A stretch of 64,000 nucleotides of DNA from Mobula hypostoma. Its lineage: Eukaryota. Below the pieces are notes generated by a model, which was not told where the DNA came from, did not search any database, and was given only the letters and a program-made list of their open reading frames with translations. The DNA is taken from assembly GCF_963921235.1 (NCBI RefSeq), contig NC_086109.1:12834001-12898000 (forward strand), written 5' to 3'. This document shows positions 36,085 to 54,700 of the stretch, piece by piece. How positions within the stretch are numbered: the stretch's first letter is position 1; the number at the start of each line of letters is the position of its first letter. A program made the translations under genes and the position numbers.

Positions 36085-38760
36085 AGTGTGAAGGAGTGGA
36101 GCTTTGAGGCTTTGACTCGAGAGATTCTGGCAGTTTTGGCAGTTGGTCTGTGCAATCAAGATTTGAATAGATCAAGAGGAAGCCATTAATTAGACAATCA
36201 AGATTTGAATAAGCTCAGACTCAGCAGAAAGCAGCTGATTGGGCAGTCAAGGTCAGGTGACCAAACATTTTGAAAAGCTCAAACAGATAAGTAGAGGGAT
36301 AGCTCAAGCGAAGCGGCCAGTGGAAAGTGGCCAGAGTGTGAGTGGGCCAGTGAAGGAGTGGAGCTTTGAGGCTTCGACGAGAAGAGGCGGAGGACAAGCT
36401 AGCTCGCAGTTAGTTTTTACAACGTCTCCTGAGATGGTGATGTGCCTCTCATGTGAGATGTGGCAGTCTTGGGGGAACTCCCCTCTCCCGCAGAGTCACA
36501 TCTGACAGAAGTGCATACGGCTGGGCGATCTGGAAGACCGTGTAAGGAATCTGGAGCAGCAGTGGGATGACCTTCGACTCATAAGGGAGAATGAGGCAGT
36601 CATAGATGAGAGCAACAGGGAGGTAGTCACACCTAGGCTGTCGGAAGCAGGTTGTTGGGTGACAGTCAGAGGAGGGAAAGCGAAGGTGAGCAGACAGGTA
36701 GTGCAGAGCATCCCTATCGCCTTTCCCCTGAATAATAAGTTTACCATCCTGGATACTGTTGGCGGGGATGACCAACCAGGTGTGGGCCACGGTGGCAGGG
36801 CCTCTGGCACTGAGTCTGACCCTGTGGTGCAGAAGGGTGGGACGGAGAAGTGGAGAGCTGTCGTCATTGGAGACTCTATAGTCAGGGGAGCAGACAGGAG
36901 CTTTTGTGGACGTGAGAAGGACACCCGCATGGTTTATTGCCTCCCGGGTGCCAGGGTCCGCCATGTCTCTGACCGGGTGCATGACATCCTGGTACGAGAG
37001 GGAAAGCAGCCAGAAATCGTGAGACATGTTGGGACCAACGACATGGGCAGGAAGAGGGATGAGGTCCTGAAGTGTGAGTTTCGGGAATCAGGCAGAAGGC
37101 TGAAGAACAGGACCTCATGGGTGACGTTCTCAGGATTGCTGCCAGTGCTACTTGACAGAGATGGTAAGAATTGGAGGAGATGGCAGTTGAATGCGTGGCT
37201 GAGGAGTTGGTGCAGGGAGCAGGGTTTTAGATTTTTAGATCATTGGGATCTCTTCTGGGGAAGGTGGGACCTGTACAGATTGGATGGGTTGCACCTGAAC
37301 TCGAGAGGGAGCAATATCCTTGCAGGTAGGTTTGCTAGCATGGTTCGGGAGGGTTTAAACTAATTTGTGAAGGGGATGGGACCCAGAGCGATAGAGCAGT
37401 GAAAGAAGTGCATGGAGTAAAGCCAGATCTAACATACAGAGAGGCTTTGAGGAAAGAGAAGCAGAATAAACGGTGTAAAGACAGTAAGGGAGAAGGGCTG
37501 AAATGTGTGTACTTCAATGCAAGAAGCATCAGGAACAAAGATGATGAACTGAGAGCTTGGATACATACATGGAATTATGATATAGTGGCCATTACAGAGA
37601 CTTGGCTGGCACCAGGGCAGGAATGGATTCTCAATATTCCTGGATTTCAGTGCTTTAAAAGGGATAGAGAGGGAGGAAAAAGTGGAGGAGGGGTGGCATT
37701 ACTGGTCACGGATACTATTACAGCTACAGAAAGGGTGGGTAATGTAGCAGGATCCTCTTTTGAGTCAATATGGGTGAATGTCAGGAACAGGAAGGGAGCA
37801 GTTACTTTACTGGGGGTATTCTATAGGCCCCCTGGTAGCAGCAGAGATACAGAGGAGCAGATTGGGAGGCAGATTTTGGAAAGGTGCAAAAATAACAGGG
37901 TTGTTATCATGGGTGACTTTAACTTCCCTAATATTGATTGGCACCTGATTAGTTCCAAGGGTTTAGATGGGGCAGAATTTGTTAAGTGTCCAGGATGGAT
38001 TCCTGTCACAGTATGTAGACAGGCCGACCAGGGGGAATGCCATACTAGATCTAGTACTAGGTAATGAACTGGGTCAGGTCACAGATCTCTCAGTGGGTGA
38101 GCATCTGGGGGACAGTGACCACCGCTCCCTGGCCTTTATAATTATCATGGAAAAGGATAGAATCAAAGAGGACAGGAAAATTTTTAATTGGGGAAAGGCA
38201 AATTATGAGGCTATGAGGCTATAAGGCTAGAACTTGCAGGTGTGAATTGGGATGATGTTTTTGCAGGGAAATGTACTATGGCCATGTGGTCGATGTTTAG
38301 AGATCTCTTGTGGGATGTTAGAGATAAATTTGTCCCGGTGAGGAAGATAAAGAATGGTAGGGTGAAGGAACCATGGGTGACAAGTGAGGTGGAAAATCTA
38401 GTCAGGAGGAAGAAGGCAGCATACATGAGGTTTAGGAAGCAAGGATCAGATGGGTCTATTGTGGAATATAGGGAAGCAAGAAAGGAGCTTAAGACGGGGC
38501 TGAGAAGAGCAAGAAGGGGGCATGAGAAGGCCTTGGCGAGTAGGGTAAAGGAAAACCCCAAGGCATTCTTCAATTATGTGAAGAAAAAAAGGATGACAGG
38601 AGTGAAGGTAGGACCGATTAGAGATAAAGGTGGGAAGATGTGCCTGGAGGCTGCGGAAGTGAGCGAGGTCCTCAATGAATACTTCTCTTCGGTATTCACC
38701 AATGAGAGGGAACTTGATGATGGTGAGGACAATATAAGTGAGGTTGATGTTCTGGAGCAT
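36085..38760 (+). mobile_element. CR1-clade LINE 5' half: ORF1 (Zn finger, zipper, SGNH esterase) and ORF2 APE endonuclease
   Basis: ORF1 36434-37363 has CLSC...HI*QKC, VVIGDSIVRG and HVGTND motifs, with one TGA at 36503-36505. ORF2 has CVYFNARSI, ITETWL, IMGDFNFP and SDH motifs. It is truncated at ~38760. Confidence 0.92.
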
Positions 38761-38968
38761 GCTGACCCTCTCCTCATTGCTATCATCAAGAAGATGTTAC
38801 AAAAGCCTGAAAACAAACACTCAATGTTTCAGAAACAGTTTCAATCCTTCCACCAGCAGACTTCTAAACGGACAGTGCATTCATGAACATCCCCTCACTA
38901 TTTTTCCTGTCTTTTTGCATTGCTTATATACAGTATAGTAATTTATGTTTTTTATTATGTATATCAAT

Positions 38969-41322
38969 CATTATGAGAAAAGCTTATATCATGGTGTAAA
39001 ACAAACAATCAGATAATCACCAACATTTGGTTTAAACAACATCCAAGAAGGAAATGGACACGGAGAAGCCCAGATGGGAACAACAAAAATCAAATCGACT
39101 ACATAACAATCAATAACAGATTCAAAAACTCTATAACTCAATCTAAAAGCTACCCTGGAGCAGAGTGTGGAAGCGACCACATACTGGTCATTTGCAAAAT
39201 GAAAATAAAGATGAGAAAATTAAAGAAACCAAAAAGATCAGAACCACTGGATTATCAACAAGCACAAATCAACCCTAATGTGAAAACAGAATACACAATC
39301 AAGGTGAAAAACCATTTTCAATTGCTGCAGGATGAAGGAGGCATATCTTCCTGCGACATACTGAAGGAATCCATGGATTAGCTGCAAAAGAAACCATCCC
39401 ATGAAAAGAACGGAAAAGTAAGCAGAAATGGATAACTGAAGATATAATACAATTGATGCAACGAAAACAGACTATCAAACTAAGAGATAGCAAAGAATAC
39501 AAACAACTTGATAAGACAATAAAAAGAAAATGCAGAGAAGCTTAAGACAGATGGCTAAATGAGAAATGCTCAGAGATAGAAATGCTACAAACCCATAACC
39601 CTGGAACAAAGTTGATGCACAGTAAGATTAAAGAACTAATGAAGAAATTACCTTGCTCAGCAAGTGGATGCATCAAGGCAAAAGATGGCAGCTTAATTAT
39701 GAACAAAGAGGAAATCCTAAACAGATGGACAGAATATATATATATATAAGAACTTTTTGAAGACCAAAGAGGAGAAAAACAGAACATAAAGAAGAATCTT
39801 GAAGGACCTAGCATTCTAAAATCAGAAATTCGAGCAGCCGTAAATAAAACAAAACATAATAGAGCAACTGGTCCAGACAACATCGCTGTTGAAATGATAC
39901 TGGCCTTAGAAGATTTTGGAATAGAAAAAATAACAGTAATAGCAAATGAAATCTATGATCATGGGGAGATACCTGATGATTTAAGTAAATCAGTGTTCAT
40001 CACACTTCCAAAGAAAGAGGGAGCAACAGAATGTGAGTTACATCATACAATAAGCCTGATGAGCCATGTGGCAAAAATTATTCTCAGAGTAATCACCATG
40101 AGAGCAAGATGCTGTTTAAAACCAGAAATCAGTAAAGAACAAAGCGGCTTTGTGGAAAACACTGGAACCAGAAATGCAAATTTCATGCTACGGATGATCT
40201 GTGAACAGGCCATCCAGGTACAAAAAGACATTTAGCTACGTTTCATTGACTATACAAAAGCTTTTGACACTGTCAGACAGCAAGATCTTCTGGAAATGCT
40301 TCAAGATCTTGACACAGATGGGAAAGATATATGTTTCTTAAGAAACTTATACTGGGACCAGACAGCATCCATCAGAATAGAAGGAGAAGTGAGTGAGTAT
40401 GTGAATATCATGAGAGGAGTCAGGCAAGGTTGTGTCTTTTCACCAGACTTATTCAACCTGTATAGTGAAAATATCTTGAGAAGTATCAAAGACATCAAAG
40501 GATTCACAATTGGAGGCCGTAATATAAATAACATCAGATATGCTGATGACATCATACTAATAGCTGACTCAGAAACAAAACGTCAAGAACTACTCACTAT
40601 AGTGGCAGCAGAAAGTAATCGCAGAGGCCTCTCAATCAACACCAAGAAGACAGAAAGCATGGTCATCTCCAGAGAGACAAACATCCCACAAAGTGTGATC
40701 AAGATCGGAATTATAAACATCAAACAAGTCAACAAATTCAAATATCTTGGCAGCCTAATGGTAAGTAATGGCAGGTGCGACACAGATATCAAATACAGAA
40801 TAGCAATGGTGAAAGAAGCTTTCTAAAAAATGAAGATCATATTAACAGACAGAAAGATGAGAATGCACACCAAAAACAGAATACTGCAGTGCTACATTTA
40901 TTCTATCCTGACTTATAGAAATGAATGCTGGACCATTTCTCCAGCAATGGAAAAGAGACTAGAAGCAGCTGAATTAAGGTTCTACAGGAGAATGTTAAAA
41001 ATATCGTGGACCACACACACATCAAATGAAGAAGTTCTCAGAAGAGCCCAAGCAGTTCCATCACTCGTAACAACAATGAGAGAAAGACAACTCAGATTCC
41101 TAGGACACATCATGCGGAAAGATGAACTAGAAAAACTCATACTCTCTGGAAAGATCGAGGGGAGTAAACCTAGAGGAAGACCTCGGCTTATGTACATCAA
41201 AAGCCTAGCCAGGTGGCTACACATCGAGGAAATGGAAGTCATCCAAAAAACGAAGGATAGATCTATATGGAAAACCATGGTCACCAAAGTCTGCATCGGA
41301 TATGGTACCTAGACAGACAGAC
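38969..41322 (+). mobile_element. 5'-truncated RTE-clade LINE (APE end plus RT), nested in a Rex1-type 3' tail
   Basis: SDHILV, HTISLMSH, GVRQGCVFSP, NIRYADD and GKIEGSKPRGRPR motifs, with an (AGAC)n tail. The 12-bp TSD is ATGTATATCAAT/ATGAATATCAAT (38957-38968, 41323-41334). Confidence 0.92.
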
Positions 41323-43636: not shown

Positions 43637-46600
43637 TGTCATGGTTTCGGCCATCCCTTCCGTTTATTCCTCATGTTCTCCTAATTCCTTTTTCCGCCTG
43701 CCTTCCCCTTCATCCTCCTGCCTGCCGTTCTCCTCCAGCCACGCTCACACCCTCATCGGCATCCCTGCTCTGCCTTGTTGCACTGCCAGCCTACACTCTC
43801 CGCTGGCTCAGTGGTTAAACGGGGCGCTCTCACCGCAGCAACCCTGGTTCGTCTCCCGGTTGAGCCTCGCTCTCTCCTCTGCTTTCCTCAGCCTAATCCT
43901 CACTCCCCGGCCTTCCCTGCAACCATTAATAAACACTCTTCAGATTACACTCCCTCTGTGTGAGTGTCCTGCGTTTGGGTTCACCCGTTCGACGTAACAG
44001 AACAATGTGGCCAACATGGACCCAGTGGACGCAAACACCATCCTACAAGCCATCGCCAGCCAGGGTTCCCTATTGGGACAGCACGACCAACTCCTCCAGA
44101 AGGTCATGGAGAACCTCGGTTCTCTGTCTGTTAACGTCACACAGATCGGGAACCAGGTGGACCGTATCTCCACTCATATTACCCAACACATACCTGGAAC
44201 CTCACCCAGAGAGCCTCACGTACAAGAGCTGCAGCACAATGCCGGAGACCTGGGGAAGTGCCGGGGTTTCCGCCTTCAATGCTCCCTGGTGTTTCAGCAG
44301 CAGCCGCCGACCTACTCCACAGGTAAGCCTAAAGTTGCTTATGTCATTGGGTTGCTACGGGGAAACACATAAGCATAGGCCACAGCAGTTTGGGACAACC
44401 AACTTCTGCTCCTCTTTCACCAGTTTCATTGCAGAGATTAGAAAGGTCTTCGATCACCCAGTTTCGGGTAAAGATGCCACTAAGCGCCTACTCACTCTCC
44501 ACCAGGACTCCCGCAGTATTGCTGAATACTCAGTGGAGTTCCGGACATTAGCAGCTGACTCGGGGTGGAACGACGAGTCGCTCCAGGGGGTATTTGTGAC
44601 CTGGTGAAGGACGAGTTGGCGCCGAGAGACGATTCTCACAGCCTGGATTCCCTGATCTCCCTGGTCACCAGGTTGGACAATCGCCTCCGGGAGCGCCGTA
44701 GAGAGAGAACTGGTTGTCCACCACCTTTGGACACTTCTCAGCTCTCTTTACCGCCTTTCGCCAGAACAAGCGTCTCTCCCCCTCCTGCACCCCAAGTAGC
44801 TCCCAGCCCTGCCGCTTCCACCACCCCGGGAGAGGAACCCACGCAGCTGGGGCAGGCACACCTTTCTCCTGCTGAACGTATCCGGAGAATGAGAGAATGA
44901 GAGCGGGCGGTCAGTCCGGCCACTTCCTTGCCTCCTGTCCACTTCGGCCCAAGGGGAGGGCTCACCAGTAGTGGTGGGGGGGGGGACCCTGGTGAGCCGC
45001 ACAACCTTCCCTGTAGTCCCCCGACCCCGGATGCAGCTTCAAGCCACTGTGTGTCATAATCAACAGTCCTTGACTCTGCTAGCGCTAGTGGACTCCGGCC
45101 AGAGGGAAACTTCCTGGATGAAAACTAGCCCTCCAAGCCGGTATTCCTCATGAGCCTCTGTGTACGGTGCTGGACGCCAATGCGCTAGACAGTAGACTCC
45201 TGGCCCGAGTCACGCACTACACGGAACCCCTGCTTCTCCTTCTCTCCGGAAACCATCGGGAACAGATACGGTTCAATCTAATCCCCTCTCAAGCCCTTTG
45301 CGTTCTCGGCCACCCATGGCTAAGCCGTCATAACCCCCACGTCGACTGGCCCATTGGGAAGATAGTCAGCTGGAGCCCGTTCTGCCATTCCTCTTGCCTG
45401 CAATCAGCCCTTCCCCCAGTGGAGGTCAATGCTACCTCGTCCGCCTCCGAGCCCCGACTTGTCCACCGTTCCCGTAGAATATCATGATCGTAGAGAGGTG
45501 TTTGGTAAGCAACGGGCCCTTTCTCTGCCACCACATCACCCTTACGACTGCACGACTGACCTTCTCCCCGGAGCCTCATTACCTACCAGTCCGCTGTCTA
45601 GCCTGTCCCGTCCAAAAAGCATGCAAGCAAGGTCCAAAAATAAAGCACAAGGTGGTGAGAAAGGATCTGTGGGTAATTTTGAAACAACTCAGTCATGTTC
45701 TAAGGATAAAGTGCCAGATCTGCTTTGTAATGAGAAATTAGAAGAAAAAGAGATCAAGTCGCCAGCTGCTTTATCCAAGACTAAAACAGATCATGAAGAT
45801 GAACAAAGCAGAGACAAGAGTAATAAGCTGAAAAATGTGGCAGAATATGTGGAGGAGGTGGAGATGATCAAAAGTAATAAAATGCAAGAGAATCATAAAA
45901 TGGAGTATGATCAGTCGGGATCTTAAGCTAACTTGCATACAGATATCAAAGATGAAGAAATTGTAGAAGGGAAAAAAGATATTGTATATTTCAAGTTTAA
46001 GGAATGGCATTTAGGAGAAAATGAAACAAATAGTACAAAAGAAAGATCTGAAAATACATTCTCAGAGTCTAGTGAAAAATTTGAAATTAATGAAGGAACT
46101 GATATAGAAAATTCCCAGTTGCATTTAAAAGAAAGCAGACTGGATACTAAGGAAATTGCACATGTTTCTCCAGGAAACATGGTGCAAATTGAAAAGTTGT
46201 TAAGATCTGAAGACAAATGAGAGGAGAGATCTGCTGCAGTGGATGAACCTGTTGAAGCCAAACCAGTTCAAATACAAGAGGAGGAAAGTCGAACACAATC
46301 GTAAGAAAAGACCACAAAGGTTGAAGGTAAAGCAAGAAACCTGACCACTGGTGTAAGTAGCCAGAGTAAACCAACCACTCGTGCAGCGTAGAAAGTAGCT
46401 GTCCTGATCACTTGTCTGTAACTGAGCAAGAAAAGCATTCACTGACTTCTACAAAAGAGAAACCAACAACTGAACTAAAGTCAGGAAAATCTCCAGCACC
46501 AGTATCAGTTACAAGATCAAGAAATCAACCATCTCCTGTGATTAAACAAGGCCGTAAAAAGAGAAGCAAGTCCAGAACGCAAAAGATGACAACATAAAAC

Positions 46601-46877
46601 TCAAGCTACCTAGATCCATGCACATACGTCCCACGGTCCACGTCTCCCAATTGAACCTGTATCTGTCAGCCCTTTGTGCCCACCTGCTGAACCCCCTCCA
46701 CCCGTCTGGGTCATCAACAATACCGGCAAGCCTGCTGGTTCGCCTGGAGGCTCCTTTTGAGGAAGGGGGTTACTGTCACGGTCCCAGCCGTCCCTTCCTT
46801 TTAATCCTCATGTTCTCCTAATTTTCTTTTCCCTGTGTTTCTCCTGCTACCCTGTCTGTCTCCCTCTCTCTGTTTGT
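43637..46877 (+). mobile_element. Gypsy element A (sushi/PEG10-like), internally deleted and carrying a foreign insert
   Basis: 5' LTR 43637-43999 (TGTCA...GTAACA), gag from ATG 44016 to TAG 44969-44971, protease LALVDSG and RT start. Then the integrase C-terminal piece ([17 protein letters not shown]), a PPT and a 3' LTR from 46774 that is truncated at 46877. Confidence 0.92.
45615..46597 (+). other. About 1-kb non-Gypsy, Glu/Lys/Ser-rich decayed coding sequence inside Gypsy A (candidate captured host gene fragment)
   Basis: A-rich and mostly one frame (ORFs 45429-45926 and 45933-46220 are in the same frame, with a shift near 46400). It ends in ...KSPAPVSVTRSRNQPSPVIKQGRKKRSKSRT. Both flanks are recognisable pol sequence. 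Confidence 0.7.
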
Positions 46878-49761
46878 GAGTCATTCTATTATTGGGGGTA
46901 CATTTCACATAAATAAAAAAGTACAAAAGTAATGTGCTTTCTCAATAAAACAATCAGTGGTTTAAGTTAAAATATTCATTCAATGTAATGTATCCACTAG
47001 TTGCAAAGCTTAAGCATTGACAACTTTTTTGATATTTTAAGGGAAAGGATATTTTTGCTAGTTAGTTTGTCAACTATGTTATGGACAAACTGTATGCCAT
47101 TACACACTTAGTCTAATGCTCTACTTTAGGTAACATACATTTTTAGGAGTTCTTGTGTCTATTCTGCCATATGCACAATGATTTTTTATGTTTTTTTAAG
47201 AATTTAATATTTTGCAGATATAAATGTGATATGCTCAGCGCTGTCATTAAGGTCAGGAGAACTTTTTTTAAATCATAAATCTGCCTTACAGGTCCTTTTC
47301 ATAGTTTTAAGAGATGTTATGCAAAACTCAAACCTGTGTGGATGTATGATATACCTTGAAGGATATCAGAAGCAGCATTTTCATTAGTTTCAATGTAAAA
47401 AAAATCAGGTGTGACATAGTTGACAATGAAAGTCCTATAGTTGACACAAGTAACATAGTTGACTGGACATAATTATTAACCATCAGCACAGTGTTTATTT
47501 CAAGGCAGAAGTGCCATTCAATTTTCAATTCATAGATAGAATTCAATGATGAATAATTAAAGGAATACAGAACACAATACATTTTCATTTACTTGAAACA
47601 AACACATAGTAGAGGAACAAGCTTTTGTACAGTCTGAATAAAATATTGACCAGTAACTGGTGAAGGGTTCAAACAAGTGCTTTCAATTCACACATTTAAT
47701 CAGAATTAAATGTTGACTAACAAAATTCATACAAAACAGTCAATATATTGTATTTTACATTGACATTTAGAAATTTGACAGATGTGAGGCAAAAAAACGT
47801 AGTAGAAGAACAAGCTTTAGTTTGACTAACTGGTGAATCATAGAAGACAACAGTTTTTTTTTATGTAATGCTTTGTTAAAATAATGAGTTCAAACAACTG
47901 TGGCAGCAGGGGTCCAAGTGACGCCTAACCTAAAAATAGTACAGTAAAATCAATATTTAACAGAACATATTAACTACAACATTCAGTTGCACATCTTAGA
48001 AACTAGACCAGATATTTTTATCGATTTCGACGTGACACGATGTCACTGGCTTTGCAGGAGGAATCATTCTCACAATGTCCTCAAACAGGTACCACAGCAC
48101 AACATCTCTTAGTGGCCAGAAGAAACAGTTGACTCCTATGTGGTGCATGCACTTTACCTGCACATGTGTCTCAGTGACTTCCTGAATGACTCCTGGGTAA
48201 ATTTTACCATTGTATTTCACAGCACACCACTGGTCAATTAAATCAGGACCCACTGGAATTCGTCATCCTTGTTTTGTCTGCTTGAGGCAGCACAAGGTTT
48301 TTTGCTGAACTCCAAAACTAAAGTTATTAGTGTTCTCACACGGACACTCAAAACTTTGTTTTATGGTGCAAGGGCAGCTTACATTTCGGTATATGATTTC
48401 TCCGGGTGCCACTGTGACTACCTGGTAGATCCGCACAGTTGGGGGCAGCACTGGCAGAATACTTGGCATTTTTTTTGTAGCTTCTTCCACGAGATCCTCC
48501 TGGGTGTAAAACACTCTCACAGTTTTGTTGTTGGCCAAAGTTCTGTAGAGGTGTTCCTCGGGTTGTTGGAAAACTTCACTGTCTGGGCCTCTGGTGGCGT
48601 AGCTAAGGTCTCAAGTCGGCGCTTTTTTTTATCTGCTTCTTTGCTGTACTTTCCTCCAGTAGGCCCTCTTGCTTCTTTTTTGTCTCTCACTCATCTCTGA
48701 CACAGTTTTGACCTTGCCTTGTGCTCTAAGCCTGTGCCATGCCTCTCTCTGCTTCTCCAAGTACGCTGACCATCTTGCAGGATCAGCATCCCGCTGAGCC
48801 CTGTATCACTGCTGCTTCTCAGCTGCTGATACCGTTTAAAATCATCAGCACATATCCCTTTAATCCTCAAACTCCTCTGGCACATGCAAGCCTAAACTAT
48901 TACAAAATATACTGATCTATGGCAACTGATCCATTAGCATCAGTGAACCATGTTACCCAGTAGGGTCACGTCAACTATGTTACTCATGAGTTGACCCTAC
49001 TGGGTAACTTAGTTGACAGGTAACAGAGTTGACAATTTCCCTATTTTAGCCCCTAATTTCAATGGTAGGCCTTGCATGGCTGACCACATGTCACTTTCTT
49101 TATCAGGTTAACCTTAAGTTTCAACATATATTTGAATTAAAGTCAGAAAAGAATTGTAAACCATAACAATGTACCGAACATAGCTGGCGGTCAATTAATA
49201 TACTCCTTGACAATGAGCTATTACAGATAAAATATTTTTAAAAATGAGAGGACACTCACCAGAATGTATTCAAAGTGGCAGCCACTGAGAGAAATGACAT
49301 CCTGTGATGCTGGTCACATGGTTTTGGGACAAACCATTTTTCAGTTGGGGGGGGTGTTCTGTTGGTAACATAGTCTATTAATGTCTGTAAAAGTTTTGTC
49401 AACTAAGATAATTATTTCATTTAAATGTGAAACTCAATTTTAAAAAACTGTATTTTTCAAAAGTATTTAGAATTTTAAAATAAATAACAAATAGATTATG
49501 CTAACTTTAATGGTTTTTAATCATTATTTTGAGGCCAAGATCCACTCAATTAAAAAATTAACATTGCAAAAACTGTCAGTTTAGGAACATCATGACAATT
49601 TCAGGCTAAATGAAACATATTGTGCACAAAATGTTTGTCTGATTTTATAATATGCTTTCCCTTAATCGGTACAATATGATATTTTTGAAGAAAATAGTTA
49701 GAAAAAATATCATTATCATCAATGGACATGAAATGTACCCCCAATTATAGAATTGTGTGTC
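46878..49761 (-). mobile_element. Cut-and-paste DNA transposon, Sola-like (superfamily tentative), with the catalytic core deleted
   Basis: Imperfect TIRs ATTCTATTATTGGGGGTACATTTCA (46883-46907) and TGAAATGTACCCCCAATTATAGAAT (49729-49753), with a left terminus GAG. Minus-strand transposase N-terminal (YRAQRDADPARWSAYLEKQRE) and C-terminal (YRNVSCPC...WCAVKYNGKIYPG...FFWP) pieces are present. Confidence 0.65.
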
Positions 49762-49778
49762 TATATATCTTGGCACGG

Positions 49779-52700
49779 TATAGGGAAACCTTGAAATTGA
49801 AGCAGAACTTAGAACACACGGTCCTAAGCGGCCGGGAAACGTTAATTACCACACAGGCAATACCAACAATCTGGCAACTAGTGGTTGTAATGCTGGGGTT
49901 CTTATGCTGCAGGTCCTGATGGAAACCAGGTGTGTTGTCATCAAAGAGAATTAGGAGCAAATGGGAAATTAACAGTCAGAGTTGTGACACAATCAAAGGA
50001 AATTAGATGAAAATAGAGAATTAACGATTGGGACCATGACAATAGTTCCCCCTCAACAGCAGCCACCAGTCAAACCACTAGGCTTGTCCAGATTGTCACG
50101 ATGGAAATCATGGATGAGGGAAGGGTCCAAGATGAAGGAGCGGGGAATCCAGCAGCATTCCTCCGGGTCGTATCCTTCCCAATCAACCAGGTACTGGAGA
50201 CCCCTGCCTCACCGGCGCACATCCAGAATTCGCCAGACGGTGTATGCTGGGTAGTCGTCAATGATCCGGGCGGGTGGAGGGTGTTTGGCAGGAGGCACAA
50301 AGGGCTGACAGATACAGGTTTCAACTGGGAGATGTGGAATGTGGGATGAATGTGCATGGATCTTGGCAGTTTACGTCTCACCACCGAGGGGTTGATTATA
50401 CTCTCAATCTCGAATGGTCCCAGATAGCGATAGGCAAGTTTCTTAGGTTCATTCTTAAGGGGCATGTCTTTTGACGAGAGCCAAACCTTCTGCCCAGGCC
50501 GCTAATTGGGAGCAGGAGTTCGATGGTAATCAGCAATCCTCCAGTTGCAGTCGGCTGAGTGGAGCATGGCTGCACGCGCATCCTTCCAGATCTTGCGGCA
50601 CCAGCGGAGATGGGCATGAACTGAAGGCACAGTAATGTCTTCTTCATGTGCGGGAGACAGAGGGGATTGGTAACAGAGGGAGCATTCGAAGGGTGACATT
50701 CTGGTGATGGAGCTGACCTGGGAGTTGTAGGCATACTCTACCCAAGCGAGATGGGTGCTCCAGGATGACGGGTTGTTAGCAGTCATGCAGTGCAGTGCTG
50801 CTTCCAAATCCTGGTTTGCTTGTTCTGTTAGTCTGCGGATGGAAGCCGGAAGACAGACTTACTGAGGCTCCAAAGGCTTGACAAAAAGACCTCCAGACTT
50901 GAGAGATGAATTGGGGGCCCTGGTCAGAAATAATGTCAGAGGGAATTCCATGAAGGCAGAAGACGTGATGAACAAGGTCAGCTGTTTCAAGGGACGTAGG
51001 GAGTTTGGGAATGGCTATGAAGTGTGCGGCTTTGGAGAAGCAGTCCACCATGGTGAGTACAACAGTGTTCCCATGCGAAGTCCAGTAACAAAATCCAGCG
51101 CAATGTGAGACCAAGGGCGGCTAGGGACAGGTACAGGATGAAGCAACCCACCAGTGGTTGGTGGGAGGCACTTCCGTGGGCACAAACAGAGACGAAGGAA
51201 CGAGTGTCAGCATCCATGGAGGGCCACCAGAGATGTCTCTTCAGAAGGAACAGAGTTCGATCGATCCCGGGATGGCAGGCAAAATGAGAAATGTGCCCCC
51301 ACTGGCGAACCTGAGACTGTACAGAGTCAGGCACGAAGAGGCGATTGGAGAGTCCATTGCCTGGGTCAGGTTGAGTCCGTTGGGCCTCTTTGACCATGGA
51401 TTCGATCTCTCAGGTGAGGGCAGCCACCACACAAGATGGTGGAAGGATGGCCTCGGGGTTGGGAAGGCCATCTTTAGAGAGGTATGGACGGGAGAGAGCA
51501 TCAGCCTTCCTGTTCTTGGACCCCCGAAGACAGGTGAGTGTGAATCTGAAACGGCCAAAAAATAATGCCCAATGGGCTTGGCGGGAATTCAGGCGTTCGG
51601 CAGTTTGGATGTATGTGAGATTCTTGTGGTCTGTCCAGACGATGAATGGACGTTCTGCTCCCTCCAGCCTGTGCCTCCACTCCTCCAAAGCGAGTTTGAT
51701 GGCCAGTAACTCCCGGTTCCATACGTCATCGTTCTGTTGGGGCGGGGGATAGCCGGCGAGAAAAGGCGGCGCGGGGATGGAGGTTTTGATGTGGGCCGGA
51801 GCATTGGGAGAGGACCGCTCCCACCCTAGAGTCGGAGGCGTCGACTTCCACAATAAATTGGCGAGGGGGGATCCGGTTGGACCAGGATGGGAGCGGAGGT
51901 GAAACGCCTCTTCAGCTCCGAGAAGGCTGAGTCCGCTTCGGGGGTCCAGTGGAAGGGGGTCGCCGGAGAGGTGAGTCGAGTAGGGGGCGCTGCCACCCGG
52001 CTGTAATCCCTGATGAAGCGACGATAGAAGTTTGCGAACCCCAGAAATCGCTGGAGTTGCTTGAGTGTCATGTGTTTTGGCCACTCCGCCACCGCCCGGA
52101 TCATTTCGGAATCCACCCTCACTTGCCTGCTCCCGATGATGTACCCCAAGAAACTGACAGAAGGGACATGAAACTCACACTGCTCGGCCTTAACGAATAG
52201 TTTGTTCTCCCAAAGCCTCTGCAGAATCTGACGGACATGGTGGATGTGTTCCTGAAGACTGCGGGAGAAGATTAAGATGTCGTCCAAATAAACTAAAATG
52301 AAACGGTTAATAAAGGCCCTAAGGACATCATTTATCAGGGCTTGCAAGACGGCGGGGGCATTGGTGAGACCGAAGGGCATGACCAGATATTCGAAATGAC
52401 CAAGAGGGACGTTAAAAGCTGTTTTCCACTCATCTCCCTCCCTTATCCTGACCAGGTGGTCGGCACTCTGTAGGTCCAATTTAGAGAAAGTGGTGGCTCC
52501 GTGAAGGGGTTTGAAAGCAGAGTAGATAAGGGGCAGTGGATATTTATCCTTTATGGCGATGCTGTCCAGGCCGCGATAGTCAATGCAGGGGCGCAGTCAG
52601 CCGTCTTTCTTCCCCACAAAGAAAAAACCCTGCGCCTACAGGGGAAGATGAGGGTTGGATAATGCCAGCCGCGAGAGTCATTTAGGTTAGCCTCCATTGC

Positions 52701-54633
52701 TTCCCTTCCGGGCCGGGACAGGTTATACAGCCGGCTGGTGGGTAGAGGGGCTTCGGGGAGAAGGTCAATTGCGCAATCGTAAGGGCGATGTGGAGGCAGA
52801 GAAAGAGCTTGTTGTTTGCTAAACACTTCTCTCAGATCGTGATACTCTGCTGGAACCTTGGATAAGTCAGGGGTTTCAGAGGCAGACGAGGTCGCGGTGG
52901 CTTCCACAGGTGAAAGGGCTGATTGCAGACAAGTGGTGCGACAGAACGAACGCCAGCTGACTATCTTCCTGGTGGACCAGTCAATGTGGGGGCTATGGTG
53001 GCTTAACCAGGGGTAATCAAGAACTATCGGAGCTTGAAGAGAGGAAATTAAATTGAATCGTATCTGTTCCCTGTGGTTCCCGGAGAGAAAGAGAGACAGG
53101 TGTGGTGTGCAATGTGTAACTCAGGCCAGTAGTCTACCGGCCAGTGCCCGGGCTTCCAAGGGGGTACTCAACGGCTCGCGAGGAATCCCGGCCCGGGAAG
53201 CTGTGTTTTCATCCAAAACGTTTCCCTCAGCGCCGGGTCCACTAGTGCTGAAAGGGACTGTTGGTTGTAACGTAAAGTAGCTGGAAGCTGCATCCGGGTT
53301 CAGGGAACGGAAGGGAATGTTGTCTGGCTCACCAGGGTCCCCCTTTCTACTGGTGAGCCCTCTCCTTTGGGCCGAAGGGGAGAGGTAACGCGGAAGTGGC
53401 TGGACTGGCTGCAATATAGACACTCACCCGCTCTCACTCTCTGTAGTCGTTCAGCGGGGGAAAGGCGGTTCCGTCCCAGCTGCATGGGTTCCTCTCCCTG
53501 AGCAGTGGAGACGGCCGGGCTGGGAGCTACTCTAGGACCAGGACGAGAGAGGCTTGTTCTGGCGGGAGACGGAAATGAGTGCCGTGGAGTGGCCAAAGGT
53601 GGTGGACAGCCTGTTGTTTCTCTATGCCGTTCTTGGAGACGATTGTCCAACCTGGTGGCTAAGGAGATCAAGGAGTCCAGGCTGTCAGTATCGTCTGTTG
53701 CCGCCAACTCGTCTTTTACCATGTCGCTGAGACCATTCCGATATACCCCTCGGAGTGCCTCATCGTTCCACCCCGAGTTGGCCGCTAACGTCCAGAACTC
53801 CACGGAATATTCGGCAACACTGCGTGAGCCCTGGTGGAGATTGAGTAGACCTTTGGCGGTGTCTTTACCACGGACAGGGTGGTCAAAGATCTTTCTCAAT
53901 TCTGCGACAAAGGTGGCGAAAGAGGAGTAGATCTCCGGTTGATTATCCCAAACAGCTGTAGCCCAAGCTAAGACACTTCCCCGCAACAAGCCCATGATAT
54001 AAGCAATCTTTGACTTATCCGTGGAGTACGTGGATGACTGCTGTTCGAACACCAAGGAGCACTGCAGAAGGAAGCCCCGGCACTTCCCCAAATCTCCAGC
54101 ATAGTGCTCTGGTTCAGGTACGTGCGGCTCTCTTGGCGGGGGTGTTGCTGACACGTAGGGGGTTGCCACTACATGCTGTCTGGGCTGGTTGGACAGAGTT
54201 CCAGAAGTGGATGGGGTAAAATGAGTGGATACACGGTCCGCCTGGTCACCGATCTTCGTTACGTCAGCAAACAGGGAACGGAGGTTCTCCATGGCCTCCC
54301 GGAGGAGTTGGTCGTGCAGACCCAGTAGGGAGCCCTGGTTGGCGAGGGCTTGTTGCAGGATACTCGTGTGTACTGGATCCATTGTGGTCAGATCTTTCTG
54401 TTGTAATGAGTAGATGAAGTGGGTTCCAAGTGCAGGACATAGGCACGGAGAATGAGTTAGGATGCTTACGCGGACGCGGACATGAACATTTAACAGCAAA
54501 CAGGAGGGATCTGTTTACGGAGCCTTGACACAGAGAGATGGAGTTTCATAGGGAAACCTTGAAACTGGAGCAGAACTTAGAACGCACGGTCCTAAGCGGC
54601 ATGGAAACGTTAATTACCATACAGGCAAAACCA
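49779..54633 (-). mobile_element. Gypsy element B (chromovirus-type, sushi-like): gag-pro-RT-RH-IN-chromodomain with two partial LTRs
   Basis: YLDD RT (51826-52479), RELLAIK RNase H, VDCFSK integrase and chromodomain [12 protein letters not shown] (~50130-50240). PPT at 50042-50054; LTR pieces 49779-50041 and 54399-54633 overlap in sequence. Confidence 0.95.
53300..54383 (-). CDS. Gypsy B Gag (open ORF from MDPV through the Zn knuckle into the protease N-terminus)
   Basis: Part of the 399-aa ORF 53300-54499, with [27 protein letters not shown] and CLYCSQSSHFRVTS (last knuckle Cys changed to Ser). Confidence 0.85.
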
Positions 54634-54700
54634 TTCTACTGGTGAGCCCTCCCTTTTTGGCCGAAGGGGAGAGGTAACGCGGAAGTGGCTGGACTGACTG

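Follow-up and report, generated by a model that had tools for sequence, protein, structure and literature searches.

A Ty3/gypsy element of the ray Mobula hypostoma with a probable fragment of BOD1L1 mRNA in place of its reverse transcriptase and integrase

Structure of the gypsy copy and of its insert

The window analysed here is a stretch of 64,000 nucleotides (nt) from the genome of the ray Mobula hypostoma (RefSeq contig NC_086109.1). It contains a copy of a Ty3/gypsy retrotransposon (copy A, 43637-46900, plus strand), in which a fragment most probably derived from the spliced mRNA of the host gene BOD1L1 takes the place of the reverse transcriptase (RT), the ribonuclease H (RNase H), and the integrase core. 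Copy A begins at 43637 with TGTCATGG, the start of a 5' long terminal repeat (LTR) that reaches to about 43990, its 3' end being approximate, and homology to the internal region of a second gypsy copy (copy B) starts at 43996. The gag open reading frame (ORF) at 43960-44607 matches Retrotrans_gag (PF03732, E 1.3e-7). It is followed by a frameshifted aspartic-protease region at 45031-45614, which contains the LALVDSG motif, is 75-80% identical to copy B, and extends to the start of the RT (..LSRP). Beyond the insert, the sequence at 46598-46773 consists of a C-terminal remnant of the integrase with a Tf2-1-type SH3 domain and of the polypurine tract GAGGAAGGGGG, which was read straight from the sequence. 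The polypurine tract lies between the integrase remnant and a 3' LTR stub at 46774-46900, of which 46774-46832 is 83% identical to the first 59 nt of the 5' LTR. The stub is truncated after about 60-125 nt, and the similarity is gone by about 46900. Both LTRs surround the chimera, the 5' LTR from 43637 and the 3' stub from 46774 onwards, after the polypurine tract. Compared with the Ty3/gypsy domain order, copy A has gag, the DSG motif of the protease, and the SH3 remnant of the integrase but no RT, RNase H, and integrase core. Because these have been lost, copy A is non-autonomous, and with its stops, frameshifts, and 3' LTR stub it is an old, dead member of its family.

What has been replaced can be read from copy B (49780-54700, minus strand), in which the Pfam domains of RT, RNase H, and integrase are present but broken and whose LTR pair (49780-49865 and 54548-54633) is 92% identical. 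At 73-84% identity, copy B is related to copy A but is not its progenitor. The two copies are collinear from 43996 to 45613 of copy A (54402-52711 of copy B) and again from 46603 to 46714 (50372-50261 of copy B, to which the integrase remnant is 84% identical). The interval of copy B without a counterpart in copy A, 50373-52710, comprises 2338 nt and carries RVT_1, RT_RNaseH, Integrase_H2C2, rve, and the start or part of SH3_Tf2-1, in that order. The ORF of copy B opposite the integrase remnant of copy A also matches SH3_Tf2-1 (E 1.6e-12). In copy A, there are instead about 990 nt, from 45614/15 to 46598-46605, which are found nowhere else in the window. With flanks that are collinear and in the same sense, the internal ORF of copy A has been replaced rather than interrupted. 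An earlier note on this DNA, made from its letters alone, had located the break and the resumption of copy A correctly, and its sizes for the two intervals (about 2.35 kb and 0.98 kb) agree with our measurements. Concerning copy B itself, a 70-nt internal segment (53342-53411) is repeated at the inner edge of the LTR region (54631-54700, 93% identity), and the same segment matches the gag-pol linker of copy A (44910-44971 against 54698-54636 of copy B). This repetition may represent a rearrangement or a duplicated leader.

The composition of the insert is different from that of its surroundings. The GC content is 0.32-0.43 in the insert versus 0.55-0.60 in the flanks, and 42% of the insert is A. 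Over its first 259 codons, the sense frame has four stops, as against 10 and 38 in the remaining frames, and in 2000 shuffles of the insert the best frame always had more than six stops (mean 20). G is enriched at codon position 1 of the sense frame, and the ORF 45429-45926 spans the left junction in frame with the upstream protease. The reading frame is broken by stops at 45924, 46218, 46302, and 46389, by a frameshift near 46390-46396, and, near 46556, by an indel of 1 nt. What the earlier note had described as an A-rich, same-sense stretch that is mostly one frame and in frame with pol is thus coding sequence that has decayed. A Pfam search with five pieces of the insert gave no match.

The parent gene

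Its similarity to known proteins identifies the insert as part of BOD1L1 (biorientation of chromosomes in cell division 1-like 1) of the myliobatiform ray lineage. A protein search with HMMER (phmmer) using the piece 45927-46217 led to the BOD1L1 of the electric ray Narcine, a protein of 1883 amino acids (aa) with a COMPASS-Shg1 domain at aa 15-110, and to an "uncharacterized protein" of Mobula birostris. In blastx searches, the insert is 70% identical over 240 aa to the BOD1L1 proteins of Mobula hypostoma and Hypanus sabinus (E 7e-99 and 5e-98, respectively). The fragment of the large exon matches BOD1L1 at 70% over 240 aa with E values from 7e-99 down to 2e-101, and the C-terminal 63-aa piece is 78% identical to the Mobula and Hypanus proteins. 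In the same searches, the identity is 56% to Pristis, 50% to Rhinoraja, 32-42% to sharks, and 30% to Narcine, the latter in a long gapped alignment. The identity to BOD1L1 declines with phylogenetic distance among the elasmobranch orthologues.

Relative to the 1822-aa BOD1L1 of M. birostris, the insert comprises two segments, from aa 1243 to about 1451 and from aa 1686 to 1814. It corresponds to aa 1243-1814 minus 237 aa, and stops eight codons (24 nt) ahead of the BOD1L1 stop codon. BOD1L1, a protein of chromatin and of the replication fork, is bound to chromatin as a partner of SETD1A and has a long disordered tail with a basic C-terminal end containing nuclear localisation signals (NLS) and an AT-hook (PMC11381347, PMC12794331). 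This disordered tail and the basic, NLS/AT-hook-type end are the parts of BOD1L1 to which the insert is homologous. Unlike BOD1L1, the insert does not contain the N-terminal COMPASS-Shg1 domain, which binds SETD1A, it is missing 237 internal codons and the last eight codons, and it is broken by stops and frameshifts. The insert consists of tail sequence only, with no Shg1 domain and no match in Pfam, and is therefore best classified as a fragment of the BOD1L1 gene and not as a BOD1L1 paralogue or a member gene of that family. The earlier note had rightly suggested that part of the gene of a nuclear protein, SR-like or of chromatin, had been captured, but could not name it; the parent is now identified as BOD1L1, which blastx matches with E 7e-99. 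Of the SP/RS-rich basic end that it described, the basic tail has been retained as the NLS/AT-hook-type end of BOD1L1, but the SR-like character is an artefact of the frameshift. Similarly, the motif KQGRKKRSKSRT is a partly frameshifted reading of a region where BOD1L1 has KQGRKREASPERKRRQHKTE.

Origin from spliced mRNA

The exon borders were taken from the BOD1L1 locus of the distant ray Narcine (L001), which was mapped with its own protein. The first and longest part of the insert (45615-46229, aa 1243 to about 1451 of the M. birostris protein, with the stops at 45924 and 46218) belongs to the large exon. Here, blastn aligns 45622-45923 to 38197-38504 and 45919-46229 to 38722-39038 of L001, with 71-77% identity over 38197-39038. 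The next part (46230-46336, with the stop at 46302) represents the exon encoding aa 1751-1786 of the Narcine protein. Its translation, EERSAAVDEPVEA..EKTTKVEGKA, aligns to aa 1686-1725 of the protein P0024. It is followed by the complete exon encoding Narcine aa 1787-1846 (46337-46515), which contains a stop and a frameshift near 46389-46396. In blastn, 46334-46515 is 75% identical to 56703-56885 of L001 and takes in the entire exon, from its AG to its GT splice site. The last part (46516-46605) is the start of the last coding exon with the basic, NLS/AT-hook-type tail and the 1-nt indel near 46556; it was found by blastn as 46514-46600, 90% identical to 60592-60677 of L001. The higher identity of this last coding exon, compared with 71-77% in the large exon, points to a strong constraint on the C-terminal basic region of the parent.

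The four blastn blocks are collinear with the Narcine locus, and the ends of the alignments coincide precisely with the AG/GT borders of the exons. The exons abut at 46336|46337 and at 46515|46516, where Narcine has introns of 5.6 kb and 3.7 kb, respectively. Both introns are exactly absent, which answers the check for lost introns proposed in the earlier note. The loss of the introns at these two positions shows that the fragment derives from a spliced BOD1L1 mRNA.

The parent mRNA is present in a small RNA-like run (X16). A contig of 5900 nt from this run matches the insert over 45616-46605 with about 91% identity and is spliced across the exon joins. To the left of the insert it translates into ..NVQLKSKEFSESMQA.., close to NVQSKSKELSESMQA of Mobula BOD1L1, and beyond 46605 it translates into VPPKRTRR-stop, which is an exact BOD1L1 match. 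With both sides matching the BOD1L1 protein, the contig is the parent mRNA. Its depth, about 30 versus 0-6 in the gypsy flanks, is in line with an expressed gene. A chimeric transcript was not seen in X16, where the insert is covered by the parent mRNA contig only.

Junctions and the internal skip

At the left junction, the sequence is gypsy up to 45613/45614 (..CTG TCC CGT CC) and parent from 45615/45616 (GAA AGC ATG.. in most copies). The two sides share GAAAG, a putative microhomology, other gypsy copies having ..CCCAGAAAGAG.. / ..CCCAGAAAGAGAAGC and the parent having ..TCTGAAAGCATG.. / ..TTTTCTGAAAGCATGC. At the right junction, the match to the parent extends to 46605 and the match to gypsy begins at or before 46603, so that the two overlap by a minimum of 3 nt (AAG) and, had the progenitor element read AAACTCAAG, by as many as 9 nt. 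Neither a poly(A) tail nor a 3' untranslated region (UTR), target site duplication (TSD), direct repeat, or terminal repeat was found at the borders of the insert. A secondary insertion of a transposable element (TE), one of the alternatives that had been put forward at the outset, was rejected given that termini and TSD are missing; in addition, the insert does not match a TE ORF, and its junctions are spanned by independent sequence. The repeat GTCCAAAAA, which the earlier note had pointed out beside the left junction, is incidental and was rejected as a signature of the junction. The window contains three matches to it, and at least three matches were obtained in 16 of 100 shuffles. The match at 45610 depends on the A at 45615, a position that is G in nearly all other copies (in the Mobula copy, RPE stands instead of RPK), and the match at 45632 is coding sequence of the parent (Arg-Ser-Lys-Asn).

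Between the large exon and the following exon, 237 codons (711 nt) of the mRNA are absent from the insert, in frame and spanning three exon junctions. In BOD1L1, the sequences meeting at this joint are ..SEDKLEER|TETF.. and ..HLHSEER|SAVV.., which are 237 aa apart. In the window, the joint GAGGAGAGA (46221-46229) encodes Glu-Glu-Arg (EER), and the same 9 nt are repeated at the internal jump. The EER joint is common to the window copy and the Mobula chimeric copy, and the X16 contig has 716 extra letters at this position. None of the annotated BOD1L1 isoforms of Mobula, Hypanus, or Hemitrygon has the skip, and their short isoforms differ at the N-terminus or in small segments only. Because there is no such isoform and the joint GAGGAGAGA has no GT donor, alternative splicing was rejected as the cause, and a jump between direct repeats is preferred. 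At its 3' end, however, the skip meets the start of an exon. We read the skip as a jump of the reverse transcriptase between direct repeats or as an early deletion in the founder.

Other copies and species

The same chimera is found in Mobula birostris. Three proteins of this species, P0001, P0003, and P0025, with 356, 424, and 433 aa, respectively, all begin in the gypsy protease and carry the left junction of the window copy and the ..SEDKLEEK.. joint. The first 145 aa of P0025 are 66-87% identical to the protease region of copy A (blastx), and P0025 has a weak, sub-threshold match to Asp_protease_2. Its end, ..NAKDNNKKLKLPRPMRIHPTFHVSHL.., shows the same right junction and then a remnant of the integrase SH3 domain. 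Both junctions thus occur, together with the skip, in a single M. birostris protein model. In the two copies examined, that of the window and that of M. birostris, the left fusion keeps the frame. The M. birostris chimera is located on a contig of 99.8 Mb and BOD1L1 on another chromosome-scale contig of 232.9 Mb. In RefSeq, this gypsy-BOD1L1 chimera is annotated as an "uncharacterized protein" gene of 10.3 kb with three isoforms (XP_072133823, XP_072133822, isoform X1), and the isoform P0003 runs on into a gypsy RT fragment. The gene is probably an annotation of TE debris, yet its uninterrupted ORF of 433 aa is noteworthy. A further search of other annotations returned no chimeric protein gene but that of M. 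birostris.

Further copies became visible when contigs of three DNA runs (X1, X5, and X9) from three species were placed on 45300-46900. Single positions of the insert are covered by 5-18 distinct contigs with 85-95% identity. An identical contig of X1 crosses the left junction (45540-45700), and the right junction is bridged by diverged contigs of 86-90% identity (46476-46649 and 46484-46640 in X1, 46397-46649 in X5). The joints between gypsy and insert have differing internal deletions in X1, X5, and X9. For example, a joint with a 151-nt deletion (45406 to 45558) is found in X1 and X5 and matches a gap in the Mobula protein model. Given that the junctions are shared by the M. birostris model and the contigs of three species, a single capture event with several copies in at least three species is indicated. 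Based on these junctions, the chimera would be a family and not a single locus. A possible non-autonomous family had been suspected before, and this suspicion gains support from the M. birostris protein and from the diverged contigs crossing the junctions.

The pieces of the insert have about 80% protein identity to the BOD1L1 of Mobula as well as to those of Hypanus and Hemitrygon, and over the same region the Mobula protein is 82-85% identical to the Hypanus and Hemitrygon proteins. In addition, the chimera has diverged from the parent mRNA by about 10%, and the LTR starts are 83% identical. The capture is old, its age being roughly in the range of the split between these ray families, although these values do not provide a precise date.

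Neighbouring features

Upstream of copy A, at 39894-41312 on the plus strand, there is a run of RT ORFs of a non-LTR, LINE-type (long interspersed nuclear element) retrotransposon, an unrelated TE. A YADD box is found in its ORF 40296-40823, which matches RVT_1 (E 3e-19). A GC-richer island located between copies A and B contains two neighbouring minus-strand ORFs of 85 and 91 aa (47996-48538), which have no match in Pfam.

Origin of the chimera

By far the most probable explanation for these data is an LTR-mediated retrocopy of BOD1L1 mRNA in a Ty3/gypsy element that subsequently spread as a family. A Ty3/gypsy element of a myliobatiform ray would have co-packaged spliced BOD1L1 mRNA. During minus-strand synthesis, the reverse transcriptase would have switched from the gypsy RNA, in the region encoding the C-terminus of the integrase, to the BOD1L1 mRNA at a position 24 nt upstream of the stop codon. 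It would then have moved back along the mRNA, copying three exons before it reached the large exon and jumping 711 nt between two GAGGAGAGA repeats on the way, and would have switched back to the gypsy RNA at the boundary of protease and RT. The resulting cDNA would have retained both LTRs, the polypurine tract, gag, and the protease at the expense of RT, RNase H, and the integrase core. After its integration, autonomous elements may have re-mobilised it in trans, giving rise to a small family with identical junctions. While the parent, the loss of its introns, the architecture of the replacement, and the junctions common to copies and species are shown by the sequences, we infer the order of the template switches, the generation of the skip during reverse transcription, and the mobilisation in trans.

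Several points weigh against this scenario. The microhomologies are short, with 3-5 nt being certain, and copy B, with which copy A was compared, is not the progenitor. The exon map was derived from Narcine, a distant ray, and not from the same species. The skip of 711 nt could have arisen afterwards, by deletion in the founder copy. The summed contig depth of 50-500 at the insert, versus about 10 for identical single-copy contigs, does not equal the copy number, and the run X1 may come from the very sample used for the window assembly. Furthermore, the other copies are known without their flanks, and the family could have spread by segmental duplication instead of retrotransposition.

This last point also belongs to a different scenario, in which a break or deletion in the gypsy element was patched at the DNA level with a BOD1L1 cDNA or retropseudogene by end joining, followed by segmental duplication only. 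Short microhomologies like those described would fit microhomology-mediated end joining equally well. However, the insert has the same sense as pol and is fused in frame at its left side, and the cis elements needed for retrotransposition (LTRs, polypurine tract, gag) have been kept. Three species have many diverged copies whose internal deletions are independent, a pattern typical of a transposed family, and the chimera and BOD1L1 are located on different chromosome-scale contigs in Mobula. We therefore regard patching by repair as very unlikely. It is hardly credible either that a BOD1L1 processed pseudogene made by a LINE landed in the gypsy element and that the RT, RNase H, and integrase regions were subsequently deleted. 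The insert is intronless as such a pseudogene would be, and a LINE RT is encoded in the window (40296-40823, RVT_1). But retrocopies made by LINEs retain the 3' end of the mRNA and lose the 5' end, whereas here the last eight codons and the UTR are missing, and there is neither a poly(A) tail nor a TSD. This course of events would also require an insertion plus a deletion ending exactly at both borders of the insert, and the same junctions are found in several copies and species. Finally, although repeats are prone to mis-assembly and the best DNA run may stem from the assembly's own sample, the chance that the insert is not truly joined to gypsy, or is a non-coding chance ORF, is practically negligible given the independent M. 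birostris annotation with both junctions in one protein model, the contigs of other species bridging the junctions, and the blastx match to BOD1L1 at E 7e-99.

Retrocopying of BOD1L1 mRNA by the gypsy element would be a vertebrate case of a known process, LTR-mediated gene capture, and does not require a new mechanism. Oncogene capture by retroviruses, a related process, usually begins from read-through transcripts of an upstream provirus. LTR-mediated retroposition in metazoans and its mechanism have been established by Tan et al. 2016 (PMC5131818), who also reported that the chimeras can re-mobilise as a pseudo-LTR or non-autonomous element. The ray chimera shares the features of their cases, which supports the template switching proposed in the earlier note: an internal, partial, and intronless mRNA copy lies between non-contiguous parts of a single LTR element, a portion of the element ORF is replaced, and a poly(A) tail and an L1-type TSD are missing. 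The short overlaps at the fusion points may correspond to the microsimilarity of those cases. In contrast to those cases, which are mostly young, single, or polymorphic loci, it is old and probably a multi-copy family in at least three species, the host is a ray and thus a cartilaginous fish, and the parent is BOD1L1. Maize Bs1 and the rice LTR elements (Elrouby and Bureau; Wang et al. 2006, as cited in PMC5131818) are likewise RT-less and non-autonomous, with cellular coding sequence in frame with gag or protease; these are, however, plant Copia or Gypsy elements, and Bs1 contains three gene pieces, while a single fragment is found here, in a vertebrate. The chimera also resembles HERV-K/FAM8A1 in human (Jamain et al. 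2001, as cited in PMC5131818) and the oncogenes of acute retroviruses, where host mRNA was recombined in during reverse transcription and the replacement of pol or env left a defective, helper-dependent element. Those are retroviruses or endogenous retroviruses with env, and the ray chimera, unlike them, shows no sign of a selected function.

Implications for rays

The survey of Tan et al. 2016 (PMC5131818) did not extend to cartilaginous fishes, and we found no literature report of this case, the elasmobranch literature not having been searched specifically. It is unlikely, but conceivable, that the family encodes a Gag-protease-BOD1L1-tail fusion that aids the element, for example in nuclear import or in chromatin tethering by the basic tail, or that has been co-opted by the host. 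Such a fusion protein is suggested by the in-frame left fusion and by the uninterrupted 433-aa ORF of M. birostris, which comprises protease, BOD1L1 tail, and SH3 remnant, and would make the chimera more than dead cargo. Independently of this, annotation pipelines already turn gypsy-BOD1L1 chimeras into models of "uncharacterized proteins", and the gypsy elements of rays can duplicate and shuffle the exons of their hosts.

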